Below are positions 17,176-22,519 of a stretch of 64,000 nucleotides of DNA, piece after piece; position 1 is the first letter of the stretch, and each line of letters starts with the position of its first letter. The notes under the pieces were generated by a model. It had not been told where the DNA came from, did no database searches, and saw only the letters and a program-made list of their open reading frames with translations. The translations under genes and the position numbers were made by a program. Where the stretch lies: positions 558,001 through 622,000 of the forward strand of contig JALMLS010000255.1 of NCBI GenBank assembly GCA_038496445.1, written 5' to 3'. The DNA comes from Trichosphaerium sp. ATCC 40318 (Eukaryota; Protista; Tubulinea).

Positions 17176-20114
17176 TTAATAGTCGCCATAGGTTGATTTA
17201 ATATTACAGTTGATGCCATCATTCCAGTGCTTGTATTCAGGAGTGTAGTATAAAAATACACTTGAGGCGTCACCAGTGTAAGAACCTTCTCCATCCGCCT
17301 ATGTGACATGATTAGGCCAAAAGTACATAAACAGTTTATCAATGATAGAAAGTGTACCTTGACTTCAATGTGAAGATCTACTTTCTGGTTTGGATCCATG
17401 CCACGCCAATATAGCATAACGTTTGAATACCTTATCTCGAAGAAATCTATGATTTCACGTGATACAAGATCCTATTATCAATATCTTAGGAGGCACGTAT
17501 TTAGATGAAAAGGTACCTGTAGTTTCTCTTTGTTAGGTTCAAGGCCACCTGGAAGGCAAATGATCGCCAAGACCATTGGCAAATCGTTTGTTGTTTTGTT
17601 TTTAATTGATACTGCAATCTCACTTGTCTCGTCTTCCTTGAGCTCCTCTGATTTTAGTGCAGACTTCATTAATAGTGGACACTCTTCCGAAGAAGGGTTT
17701 TGAGATGTCAGGTAGGTCAAGTGAAAGGTGTACGGCAAACTCTCCATTGCTCCAAGAGTAATTTTGAACTCATGATCACCACTTGTAAGTGTTTTGGCAA
17801 CTTCAGAGAAATCTATAAATAACTGCATCAGAAACGAGTAAAACAAATAGGTCCTTACCAATATCTACGCATCTTAGATCATTTGGAGTCACCATTGTAA
17901 TGATTTCAGTTTCACCTATAGTCTGGAGAGAAAAAAGTCAGGTAAGCGTTTGTTGCAACACAATTTAGCATATCGTACAGCTACAACTTTTAGCTTGTCT
18001 GTTTGGTTACTATGAGGCATCTTTAAAGATATAGTGAATATAGCACGTAGTGCTTGGATAGTTGCTTGAGGTGTAGCCCAAGAACCATTTGATATTTGAG
18101 ATATAAGGTACTTGGCAGCAGCACCAATATTTGGCATATATTTGCGAGGATTATCGCGCATCCACGCTGTCATTGCAAGACCAGTAGTTTCAATATCAAG
18201 AGAACTTCCACTAGACCTTACAATAGATGAAGTGCTTCCTTCCACTTTACCATCTAAACCACAAATACATGAGTTAAAATAAGAAAAAAAAGAGAAAATT
18301 ACCTTTGGATTGTTTGGAAGCGAGAAAATCAGCTGCTTCACTAGCACCAGTCTTGTTGTTTGTATTCACAAAAGTCATATACATACAGGCCCATACATAT
18401 GAGTTTGTATTACTAGATAACTTGCTATGTTGGCATTGAAGTTCTTTATCCAAACCATCAAGAACACCAACCTCAGTAAGCCCATACAAACAATACGCTA
18501 ACAACCCACTTAGAATAGAAAGAGAAAGCTGGCCTACCATCATTTACGTCTTTTTCAGGAGCTACATAGTTATAACGTCCACTACAGCTTTGAAATCCTC
18601 CTTCACCATCTCTACGACTCAACAACCATTCCTTGGCGCGATCCATAAGAGCTTTATCAACTAAATCGTGTTAGCGTAACAGCTCTTTATATACCAACTA
18701 AGCTGTACCTTCTACTGTTTTGCCAATATCGCTCAGTAACATTAACCCATATGCTGTCAAAGACTCATGAGCAGGTGAACCACCATACCTACAACAATGA
18801 ATAAAGTCACAGCTGATTGCAAAAAACGAAAAAACCCCAACTTCAGCTCTGGCAGTGCCACGGCTCAGTCTTGTATAGCCAGTTTAGTACCATTCAAATC
18901 CTGATGTGTTCTCTGTTTCAAAATCAACAAGCTTCCGGTATCCAACCCTCAGTTTTTCGTGTATGTCAGAAATAAACTCTGTATCTGCACTCTTAGGATT
19001 TTCTTTCAAGAAAATAGCAGTCAAAGCATTTGGATATAAAGTAGATGCAAAATGTTCAAATGACCCACAATGAATATGCGCCATTCCCTTGATTGCATTT
19101 TGGAAAGTGGCCATCAAGCTGGGTTGTAAAGACACGCGTATTTTCACTGTATTAGGCACTACAGAAAATAAGTAAGCTGAAAAGCCCATCCAACTTCCAA
19201 AAAAGAAGACAAAAGTGACGTACCAAGATCAGGTGATATAGTAAATGTATGAGTTCCTGTATCTCGCTTGTTAATTACACCACTTCCAAAGTACTCAACA
19301 GGGAATCCCTTAGCGAAACCATTGAGTAAACACAACCACAATCTAACCTCACCTTGCCAGGCTTCCTGGCACTGAGAGCCAGGTCTTGCTCCACATTTAG
19401 TTCCTTGTAAATCAAAGGTGTCTCAGATGTTCCTGTCGTAACCACGAAGTATGCTACATTATCCACACTAACTGTAGGATTCAATTGAGACCTCAAAGAC
19501 TCTGGAACAATATCTAGAGATCTACCAACAAGTTTTCCGTTTAAAGTCCTGTAAGACAATCATTAACACTTGTTACAAGCTAGTGAGCGTACCAAAACAC
19601 TGTGCCATCAGCTTCAATACCACAACCTACTATCGAACCCTCGCTGAACCTTTGACCCATCTTCGTTTCTGCTTTGTTAAAGAAGAAGTCCCCAGTATCG
19701 CCATGATAAGCCCATGAACTATGATTGGCGTTTAGGAGCCTTTGTTGATTATATCAAATAAAACTGTACTTTTCATAGTGTCCTGGTCTATCACTTGTTA
19801 GTGATATATCGTTTGTAGCGTATCCAATGGCGCAACAGCTAAAAAAAGACTCAATATTTCAGCCTAGTTGATGTATAAGCTTGTATTACCCTTCTCCGTC
19901 ACCCCCTACGCGTAGAAACTTGATATGCACTTCGTAGTACGTAATGGGCGTGTTACATAGTTGAAATACCTTAGGCGCCTAATTAGCCGGATAATACCAC
20001 AATAAGACGATTGTGTACTTGATCTACGCCAGCGTCTCCAAATACAGAAGCGAAAACAACTGATCCATTATCCAGGTCGTTAATAGAACAAGCTTGGCTA
20101 TTTCTCGTTGACAT
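17176..20114 (-). CDS. SPRY domain fused to alpha-2-macroglobulin/TEP C-terminal region (thioester domain and receptor-binding-like domain)
   Basis: SPRY: YYEVHI..CAIGY..SWAYHGDTG..GSIVGCG..TLNG..LNPTV. TED: GSFEHFASTLYPN, GFEWYGGSPAHESLTAYGL, IETTGLA, GSWATPQATIQAL. C-terminus: MVLAIICLPGGLEP and LYYTPE. Confidence 0.85.
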
Positions 20115-20443: not shown

Positions 20444-22519
20444 TCACATCAAGTCACCCACAACTTGTACGTCTATGACTTCTCCATTGACATAAATACG
20501 CTTTATGTGTTTACGTCCGCTTTCATGCCACTGTGTTGATTCACCGTTGAGTACACCATCAATGTAATTGAATTGACATTGGATTTTACCATTTTGATGC
20601 CATTGCTGGTAGTATCCGTCTTTATACCCATCAATACACGTGTAATTTTCGTCTAGCGCTCCGTTCTCATACCATGTCTCAACAGTACCATTTGATTTTC
20701 CGTTCTTGTACATACACCGTAACTTGAGCTGTCCGTTGTTGTACCACTGTCTATACTTATTGGTCATCTTTCCATTGGTGTACACGCATTCTATTTCGAT
20801 TTGTCCAGCTTCATACCATTGTCTAAACCTTCCGTTCATCTTGCCGTTGACGTACATGCACTCTGTTTTAAGTTGTCCGTTTAAGTACCACTCTTCAAAC
20901 AAACCATTGATGTTGCTATTAAGGTACAAACATCTCTTTTTGAGTGTTCCATTTTCATACCACTCCTGAGACTTTCCATTGCCAGTATTATAATGTGCCT
21001 TTAGGTGGCCATTGTAGTACCATCTCATGACCTCGCCAACCTCAACGCCATCAACATGGTAAGAAAGCTCTCTCATTTGCCCGTTCTCATACCATTCTAT
21101 ACAGTCACCATTCTTCATTCCATCCATTCTGTGAAAGTGTAGTTCAAGCTTCCCATTTTCATACCACATCTTATGCTCACCTTCTTCGTTACCATCTTTA
21201 AAGAAGCAAAGCTCTTTGACTGTTCCATCAGCGTACATATACGAATACGCTCCATCCAACTTGTCATCCTTGTAAATACACTGTTCCTCAAGTGTTCCGT
21301 CTTCATACCACCTTTTGGCAACGCCATTTTTTTTACCATGCTTGTAAATAGCACTTTCTTGGATTCTTCCATTATCATACCATCTCCTGCACTCTCCTTC
21401 AAACTTGTCGTTATAGCTTATATAGAAATGTCGCTTTTTTCCATTCTCAAACCACGTTTTCCGGAGGCCATGCACATTACCGTCCTTGTAAACACATTGT
21501 TCCTTTCTTTCTCCGTTCAGATGCCACTCTTTGTACTCTCCATTTTTTTCACCAGCAATGTAATAGCCCTCTATTTCAGGAGCTCTATCGTTATACCACA
21601 AAGTACAGTGACCGTTTCGTTTGCCGTCAACCCACATGCTTGTTTCTCTAAGTGCGCCATCTTTACACCACCTCTTCATCTCACCTTCTTTGATACCATC
21701 GCTGTAACAGCATTGCACTTTGACTTGTCCGTCTTCATACCATTTTATACACTTGCCCGTCTTATTACCCTTCTCGTAAGTGCACCGTTTTTTGCATTGT
21801 CCGTTCTTATACCACTCTTTGTAGTCGCCATGTCTTTGATTTTCAACATAAGCACAATCAAGTTCACATTGTCCGCTCTGATACCACTTTTTAGCCTTCC
21901 CGTTTTGTTTGCCGTCAGCCCACAAACTGTATTCTTCAGGCTTTCCATTCTGAAACCATTTCTTACACTCTCCATATAGCTTGTTGTCAATGCTTGTGTA
22001 ATCAAGCCGTGGTTTTCCATTACCATACCACCTCTTGCACATTCCGTGTATCTTGCCTGCTTTGAACATGGACTGCTCTTTCGTTACTCCATTCTTGTAC
22101 CACTCGGAACACTCTCCGTTCTTCTTGTCATCTTTGTAAATGCGATGTTCCGCAAGTTGTCCATTCTCATGCCACTTTTTATATTCACCGTTCTTCTTGT
22201 TGTCAATGAAATAACAGTGCACATCGAGTTTGCCGTTCTCGCGCCATTGTTTAAAAACACCATTCTTCTTTCCATCAATCAACAAATACTTAGAACGTAT
22301 ATTGCCACTGTTGTACCAGACCGTCCACATTCCGTGCTTATCAAGGTTTTCATTGTAGTGCGTGCTGATTGCAGCTCGCTTAGATAGCGTATGAAACTTC
22401 TTAAAAGTTTCGTCATTGAAAGAGCACAAATAACGTTGAATATCTCTTGGCAGGTCTAGTAACTCTGTGGGAGGAGCAATGACAATAGGTTGGTATTGTC
22501 CAGGCTTGTTTGTAGTCAT
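20444..22519 (-). CDS. Intronless F-box-like + MORN-variant (YwqK-like) repeat protein, 691 aa
   Basis: Single ORF. N-terminal LLDLPRDIQRYL, then roughly 25 repeats of about 24 aa (GxxxxWYxNGxxxxxxxYxxGKxx). Confidence 0.9.
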   Translation of the reverse strand: MTTNKPGQYQPIVIAPPTELLDLPRDIQRYLCSFNDETFKKFHTLSKRAAISTHYNENLDKHGMWTVWYNSGNIRSKYLLIDGKKNGVFKQWRENGKLDVHCYFIDNKKNGEYKKWHENGQLAEHRIYKDDKKNGECSEWYKNGVTKEQSMFKAGKIHGMCKRWYGNGKPRLDYTSIDNKLYGECKKWFQNGKPEEYSLWADGKQNGKAKKWYQSGQCELDCAYVENQRHGDYKEWYKNGQCKKRCTYEKGNKTGKCIKWYEDGQVKVQCCYSDGIKEGEMKRWCKDGALRETSMWVDGKRNGHCTLWYNDRAPEIEGYYIAGEKNGEYKEWHLNGERKEQCVYKDGNVHGLRKTWFENGKKRHFYISYNDKFEGECRRWYDNGRIQESAIYKHGKKNGVAKRWYEDGTLEEQCIYKDDKLDGAYSYMYADGTVKELCFFKDGNEEGEHKMWYENGKLELHFHRMDGMKNGDCIEWYENGQMRELSYHVDGVEVGEVMRWYYNGHLKAHYNTGNGKSQEWYENGTLKKRCLYLNSNINGLFEEWYLNGQLKTECMYVNGKMNGRFRQWYEAGQIEIECVYTNGKMTNKYRQWYNNGQLKLRCMYKNGKSNGTVETWYENGALDENYTCIDGYKDGYYQQWHQNGKIQCQFNYIDGVLNGESTQWHESGRKHIKRIYVNGEVIDVQVVGDLM

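Follow-up and report, generated by a model that had tools for sequence, protein, structure and literature searches.

A truncated SPRY-A2M gene of Trichosphaerium with a lost thioester motif, probably derived by internal deletion from a full-length SPRY-SPRY-A2M gene

Introduction

Thioester proteins of alpha-2-macroglobulin (A2M) or complement type are textbook extracellular or periplasmic molecules. Thioester-less members of the family are known as well, namely complement C5 and Drosophila Mcr/TEP6, in which the thioester domain (TED) is without the Cys-Gln pair and which have non-covalent functions. Here we describe a gene of the amoeba Trichosphaerium sp. ATCC 40318, located in a stretch of 64,000 nucleotides (assembly GCA_038496445.1, contig JALMLS010000255.1, positions 558,001 to 622,000; henceforth the window, to which coordinates refer unless another contig is named), that is predicted to join one SPRY domain to the C-terminal part of an A2M/TEP-family protein. 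By comparison with three paralogues in the same genome, it appears to be a truncated copy that has lost its thioester motif and is maintained by selection.

A sequence-only reading of the window had pointed to this gene as a free-standing fusion of uncharacterised architecture. The architecture does appear to be uncharacterised, as literature searches returned no description of a SPRY domain joined to an A2M/TEP protein, nor of an intracellular protist A2M. The novelty lies in the truncated derivative without a thioester and in the way it arose, and on the latter point our interpretation departs from that of a free-standing fusion.

Results

The minus strand from 20114 to 17176 is predicted to carry a multi-exon gene with its ATG at 20114 and its TAA at 17178-17176; the gene proposed earlier for this span is thus real, with a spliced open frame at exactly these coordinates. 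It was pieced together from open-frame segments in three frames joined through GT-AG introns, and the resulting model has 15 exons, 14 introns of 40-102 nt and 729 codons without an internal stop, with canonical sequences at 28 of 28 splice sites. The DNA of the window is eukaryotic, with 35-40% G+C, and belongs to an assembly of 70.3 Mb.

17176..20114, minus strand: whole coding region of the truncated SPRY-A2M gene (hand-built model; intron positions recur in the paralogues)
20114-20019, 19969-19890, 19838-19770, 19718-19593 and 19548-19353, minus strand: exons 1-5
19308-19224, 19158-18891, 18788-18709, 18660-18538 and 18497-18303, minus strand: exons 6-10
18253-17979, 17922-17859, 17812-17517, 17471-17358 and 17298-17176, minus strand: exons 11-15

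Intron 1 was taken as 49 nt (20018-19970) because of homology to the paralogues, giving a protein of 729 aa; its GTACAC donor and CCTAAG acceptor lie at the places equivalent to the ends of the paralogues' 48-nt intron, which sits between ...EQ and VFQLC.... A 19-nt intron 1 was ruled out by the same comparison.

Queries with the exons against the amoeba's own genome returned exactly three close paralogues, one on C21 and two in tandem on C95, to which the window gene is 42-68% identical exon by exon. The three copies begin with M-S/G-T-R-Q-S and continue with SPRY1, SPRY2, an MG2-type domain about 110 nt after SPRY2, further open-reading exons, a Lys/Ser/Pro-rich low-complexity stretch at the bait position, the A2M domain (MG7), a TED with PCGCFEQ, and MG8. 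The C21 copy and the C95b copy are close to each other, with a nonsynonymous divergence (dN) of 0.036 in the C-terminal part. On C6 and C33 are two A2M-family genes of greater distance, which had no SPRY domain in the flanks examined.

C21:~246392-239004, C95:~132151-124698 and C95:~123955-116578, each on one strand: full-length paralogues (SPRY, SPRY, MG2, A2M, TED, MG8)
C21:242413-241991, C95:128404-127790 and C95:120039-119692: Lys/Ser/Pro-rich low-complexity exon of 115-205 aa at the bait position of the full-length paralogues

The window gene has in common with these paralogues the start, SPRY1, the C-terminal CUB-TED-CUB-MG8 unit, the absence of a signal peptide and all 14 of its intron positions, which recur with the same phase and exon length. 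It differs from them in being without SPRY2, the MG domains, the Lys/Ser/Pro-rich bait-like stretch and the A2M (MG7) domain, and in reading GSFEH instead of GCFEQ. Some irregularities were seen in the full-length copies. Exon 8 of the C95a copy (77% identical to that of the window gene; C95:118146-118223) sits between exons 7 and 9 in the opposite orientation, which may reflect a small inversion that disrupts this copy or else an error of assembly at this place, and exon 9 of the same copy has GG instead of AG as its acceptor. In the C21 copy, the predicted donors of exons 7 and 14 read GC where the window gene and the C95 copies have GT, so that these may be GC-AG introns.

The place at which the window gene parts from its paralogues lies inside exon 5. 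Homology to SPRY1 of the paralogues extends to ...PLIYKE, where the paralogues carry the splice donor GAA C/GTGAGT; the frame of the window gene reads on, through three codons and then through the 13 codons EQDLALSARKPGK. The latter align without gaps with the last codons of the paralogues' MG7 exon, EDNIVRSVRIQPK, and with the corresponding outgroup strand, DDVARTVRVVPA, in each case directly before a conserved GFP. Only a 44-nt intron (19352-19309), at the position of the paralogues' intron, separates this remnant and with it exon 5 from exon 6.

19392..19400, minus strand: deletion junction inside exon 5 (the SPRY1 exon of the paralogues ends at the equivalent of 19400; the window frame reads on)
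19353..19391, minus strand: 13-codon MG7 (A2M domain) exon remnant EQDLALSARKPGK (matches paralogue EDNIVRSVRIQPK and relative P0058 DDVARTVRVVPA)

These features fit an exon 5 that is a chimera left by the in-frame loss of about 4.6 kb of genomic DNA, and the part removed, judged from the layout of the paralogues, comprises SPRY2 and the MG ring together with the bait-like region and almost the whole of MG7. As SPRY-derived and A2M-derived codons stand in one exon, the linkage between the two halves is independent of any predicted splice. This bears on the possibility that the model joins two neighbours, a gene with SPRY alone and, next to it, an A2M fragment truncated at its 5' end. Such a mis-join could be argued from the facts that the joining of the exons is predicted from genomic sequence and that retention of intron 5 would bring the SPRY frame to a stop after 26 further codons; we nevertheless consider it extremely improbable, given that exon 5 holds SPRY sequence and MG7-derived codons in one open frame, that intron 5 is at the paralogues' position and in the right phase, that no in-frame ATG precedes the TED within the A2M part, and that SPRY and A2M follow each other in the same order and on the same strand in all three paralogues.

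Divergence estimates are in keeping with a common history of the two halves. The dN from the paralogues is 0.32 for the SPRY and 0.34 for the C-terminal part, and the synonymous divergence (dS) from the C21 copy is ~1.3 for both, whereas the SPRY dS from the C95 copies, at 2.5-2.6, is near saturation; the equal divergence of both halves fits a single origin. When 74 outgroups were included in a tree, the window gene came out as the sister of the full-length copies with a support of 1.0, on a branch of 0.57 compared with 0.24-0.27 for the paralogues, i.e. about 2.2 times longer. Taken together, the shared introns and the chimeric exon 5 lead us to consider the window gene as very probably a deletion derivative of a full-length SPRY-SPRY-A2M gene of the same genome, in place of the free-standing fusion proposed earlier.

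In addition to the deletion, the reactive motif of the TED is altered. A Ser codon (19063-19061) stands in place of the thioester Cys and a His codon (19054-19052) in place of the Gln, giving GSFEH in the window gene compared with GCFEQ in the paralogues; CFEQ is found in 157 of the 163 relatives that we retrieved.

19052..19072, minus strand: lost thioester motif H-C-G-S-F-E-H (from alignment with PCGCFEQ of the paralogues)

The C-x-E-Q motif of the intrachain thioester, by which A2M/TEP proteins are recognised, is therefore missing from the window protein, and the thioester domain announced in the sequence-only reading is present as a TED fold unit whose motif is gone. Since both thioester residues are lost, covalent complement-like tagging by this protein is excluded. 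With neither bait region nor MG ring nor thioester, the protein as predicted has no means of caging a protease or of bonding covalently to a target. We do not file it as a thioester-containing protein, because tests for thioester, ring, bait and secretion signal each showed the feature to be absent; on its sequence it is a derived homologue of the A2M/TEP family.

Loss of so much of a protein could indicate a gene in decay, that is, a functionless deletion allele of a duplicated trap gene whose frame is still open by chance. The catalytic motif and two thirds of the protein are gone, the branch is longer and the ratio dN/dS higher than in the paralogues, expression of the gene is presumed from its sequence, and one of the full-length copies, C95a, looks damaged too. 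However, the window gene differs by 35% of nucleotides from its paralogues and has neither a stop nor a frameshift in 729 codons, all of its splice sites are canonical, and when the C21 coding sequence was mutated at random, none of 2000 neutral simulations remained stop-free, either at the observed divergence of 35% or at one third of it. The dN/dS relative to the paralogues is 0.27 for the C-terminal part and 0.12-0.24 for the SPRY, compared with 0.12 between two full-length copies. Conservation of at least 90% among the 74 outgroups defines 49 columns, of which 39 are retained in the window gene and 41 in the full-length paralogues; four losses are peculiar to the window gene, namely the P, C and Q of P-x-G-C-F-E-Q and one further proline, so they cluster in the thioester motif and are not scattered. 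Codon comparisons thus show the predicted gene to be under purifying selection, and the pattern is that of a targeted loss of the reactive bond with the fold kept, as opposed to scattered pseudogene decay. A functionless relic is, on this evidence, very unlikely.

To delimit the domains, the joined spliced protein was analysed with local scripts and Pfam scans were run per exon; the limits of the C-terminal domains are approximate and were transferred from the AlphaFold model of P0094, a relative from Protostelium.

19401..20114, minus strand: signal-less N-terminus and one SPRY domain, aa 1-173 (homologous to SPRY1 of the paralogues)
19124..19308, minus strand: first half of CUB, about aa 190-229 (approximate; mapped onto the P0094 AlphaFold model)
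18012..19117, minus strand: TED, an alpha/alpha-toroid, aa 232-520, exons 7-11 with introns (approximate)
17706..17993, minus strand: second half of CUB, aa 527-588 (approximate)
17200..17675, minus strand: MG8/receptor-binding-like C-terminal beta domain, aa 599-722 (approximate; relatives match Pfam A2M_recep, bMG10 here)

The SPRY domain is recognised on exon 4 alone (PF00622, E 4.2e-7, 30.5 bits, above the gathering cut-off of 26.3), and 141 codons are collinear with SPRY1 of the paralogues at 58-60% identity. The nearest solved chains are those of SPRYD3 (2yyo, E 2e-4) and, weakly, of RanBP9/10 (5jia, 5ji7), so that the label 'RanBPM-type' given to this domain earlier is a fair one. The model contains no RING, B-box or coiled coil and no PRY extension of the TRIM-type PRY-SPRY (B30.2) kind, and the nearest solved SPRY domains are not those of TRIM proteins.

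Recognition of the C-terminal part depended on the joined model or on profiles. Single TED exons matched Pfam TED_complement marginally (E~0.1), and a TED exon alone found no match in the PDB by phmmer, while a feature search with exon 11 (Atlas) returned TED clusters. Residues 200-739 of our first model could be aligned over their entire length to the C-terminal ~530 residues in 74 proteins of the A2M family (local phmmer, best E 1.5e-97), and the profile of the C-terminal part of the nearest relatives matched human A2M residues 897-1457 (E 4.5e-41), then A2ML1, CD109, TEP1 and C3, with E. coli YfhM at 1e-4 only. Collinear alignment of aa 190-722 to P0094:238-779 (34% identity, pairwise) indicates that CUB halves around the TED and a C-terminal MG8 are present. 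The AlphaFold model of this unit in P0094 (mean pLDDT 87.1, pTM 0.78) consists of strands, 13 helices, strands and strands, and superposes on native A2ML1, A2M, C3 and CD109 at TM 0.75-0.80 and on TEP1 at 0.68-0.70, compared with about 0.45 for activated C3b and induced A2M.

The ring domains MG1-MG7 are absent, as homology to paralogues and outgroups reaches back no further than the final 13 residues of MG7 and a different gene lies next upstream; bait region and anaphylatoxin domain are absent as well. The sequence-only reading was accordingly correct in describing a protein without N-terminal MG domains and bait region and in assigning to it a TED and a receptor-binding-like end (in our map CUB-TED-CUB-MG8), but its last MG domain before the TED amounts to just 13 residues of MG7. 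It was also right about the signal peptide. The N-terminus has no hydrophobic segment, the maximum Kyte-Doolittle(19) value over the whole protein is 1.25, no transmembrane segment is present, and the start, M-S/G-T-R-x-S, is common to the paralogues. An in-frame ATG 13 codons further upstream (20153-20115, minus strand; MELLPILRSSDNT) could lengthen the protein by an extension that is neither conserved in the paralogues nor signal-like.

Other N-termini in the family also deserve mention. The C21 paralogue (MGTRQS) and the relatives P0002, P0011 and P0072 (MGQKPT, MGNEHS and MGQKHS) have an N-myristoylation-like start, M-G-x-x-x-S/T, without a signal peptide. In the window gene, as in the two C95 copies, the protein begins with MS. 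A hydrophobic N-terminus is present in about half of the full-length relatives, probably those from bacteria.

The nearest relatives outside this genome come from protists (Anaeramoeba, Physarum, Protostelium, Flabellula), from Planctomycetota and from metagenomes. No SPRY domain was found among the 163 retrieved A2M-family relatives, 19 of which were run against Pfam. Several proteins of ~740 aa in which the TED occupies the place it has in the window protein (P0013, P0024, P0074 and others) were considered as look-alikes and rejected, being A2M-TED-MG10 fragments without SPRY. Two relatives carry other insertions. P0016 (Anaeramoeba ignava KAJ5074730.1, 1935 aa, annotated 'polyubiquitin-like') has five ubiquitin repeats between its MG and A2M domains, at the usual bait site, and an intact GCFEQ, and in P0053 (a transcript of Namystynia karyoxenos, 2216 aa) the bait position, flanked by A2M_BRD and A2M, is taken up by an HSP70 domain (residues 933-1411, Pfam E 2e-78).

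Upstream of the truncated gene, at a distance of 330 nt and on the same strand, lies an intronless gene (20444-22519, minus strand) of 691 aa with MORN-variant (YwqK-like) repeats.

Discussion

The question raised by these observations is what a protein of this kind could do once the chemistry of its family is gone. The predicted product has 729 aa, is signal-less and presumably cytosolic, the missing signal peptide being the one indication of an intracellular location, and consists of one SPRY domain and an intact CUB-TED-CUB-MG8 unit with GSFEH. Retention of the 540-aa C-terminal unit under selection despite the lost chemistry argues for a binding role of its own, and scaffolding or recognition appears to be the most plausible function. 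We suggest that the SPRY half would bind a protein target and that the conserved TED/MG8 unit would bind a partner that normally reads TED/MG8 in the full-length paralogues, which would make the window protein an adaptor or regulator of an intracellular SPRY-A2M trap system. The reading as a whole, of a selectively maintained deletion derivative that acts as a non-covalent, SPRY-directed adaptor or regulator, is tentative and in our judgement falls just short of probable; the adaptor mechanism taken by itself is possible, if somewhat doubtful.

A simpler role would be that of a decoy, in which the SPRY domain competes with the full-length traps for the same ligand and, in a dominant-negative manner, damps trapping, with TED/MG8 as a stable carrier only. 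Retention of a SPRY1 collinear with that of the paralogues would be in keeping with this role, and so would the disappearance of every trapping part, bait, MG ring and thioester alike. On the other hand, a pure SPRY decoy would have no need for 540 residues of CUB-TED-MG8 held at a dN/dS of 0.27 with nearly all of the family-conserved residues, and for this reason we favour the adaptor or regulator; moreover, the window SPRY1 is 40% diverged, compared with about 94% identity among the SPRY1 domains of the three full-length copies, and may differ in its ligand. We regard a decoy as unlikely.

Several points weigh against the interpretation as a selectively maintained adaptor or regulator. The ~2.2-fold longer branch and a dN/dS twice that of the paralogues could reflect relaxed constraint, not a new function, and the pairwise dN/dS is an average over both lineages at a dS of ~1.3, which is near saturation. 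The fold of the window protein is seen through its relative P0094, transcription and splice pattern are those predicted from the genome, and the binding partners and ligands named above are putative. Furthermore, searches brought up no orthologue of the truncated gene from other species, and conservation of the truncated architecture can therefore not be shown; the large representative protein library that was searched contains neither this genome nor its close kin, judging from a profile of exon 7, whose best match scored 67.7 bits with nothing exceeding about 50% identity.

The proposal can be extended to an amoeba with a multi-component intracellular complement-like system, in which full-length SPRY-SPRY-A2M proteins would covalently trap or tag cytosolic targets and the thioester-less mini-protein would be a dedicated second component. 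The latter would couple SPRY-recognised targets non-covalently to the machinery that reads TED/MG8, or gate that machinery, by analogy with the split in animals between C3 and its thioester-less relatives or regulators. This extension is more speculative, and we consider it distinctly unlikely.

A protist A2M family that is signal-less and carries SPRY docking domains in fusion suggests an additional, intracellular use of the trap fold, which bears on whether complement-like systems began intracellularly, as discussed in PMC5241319. The locus offers a natural dissection of that family, in which selection has kept SPRY and CUB-TED-MG8 and discarded the ring, the bait and the reactive bond. Such selective retention without the bond implies that TED/MG8 has a function independent of the thioester, probably binding. 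At 729 aa, the protein is a compact construct for finding the ligands of both halves and, where covalent capture by the full-length paralogues is concerned, a ready-made negative control.

Among known systems, the C-terminal part of the window protein agrees, by the profile of its nearest relatives and the modelled fold of P0094, with the solved A2M/TEP proteins, namely human A2M (6tav/7von), A2ML1 (7q1y), CD109 (8s3o), Anopheles TEP1 (2pn5) and C3 (2a73). These are secreted or anchored by glycosylphosphatidylinositol, have MG1-MG8, a bait region or anaphylatoxin domain and, except for C5, a CGEQ thioester, and are without SPRY; the window protein has none of these attributes but a SPRY domain. 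The thioester-less C5 and Mcr differ from it in that they keep a full MG ring and are secreted or membrane proteins, the comparison made here being that of the C5 matches in the structure searches. The signal-less protist A2M proteins (Anaeramoeba ignava KAJ5074214.1, A. flamelloides KAJ3432316.1, and transcripts of Physarum, Protostelium and Flabellula) belong to the same clade of GCFEQTSS-type TEDs, and several of them begin with MG... and have no hydrophobic N-terminus; unlike the window protein, they are traps, complete or partial, in which CFEQ is intact and SPRY is missing. On the SPRY side, SPRYD3 and RanBP9-RanBP10 have a similar domain, and the PRY/B30.2 context of TRIM proteins is missing from the window protein, but SPRYD3 and RanBP9-RanBP10 combine their SPRY with LisH/CTLH or other modules and are not known to combine it with A2M-family domains. 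A further likeness is that to C3d/C3dg, chains of which were matched by profile and in which a TED freed from the MG ring serves in non-covalent surface recognition. C3dg is made by proteolysis after covalent attachment, whereas the window protein is truncated genetically, keeps CUB and MG8, has no attachment chemistry and adds a SPRY domain.

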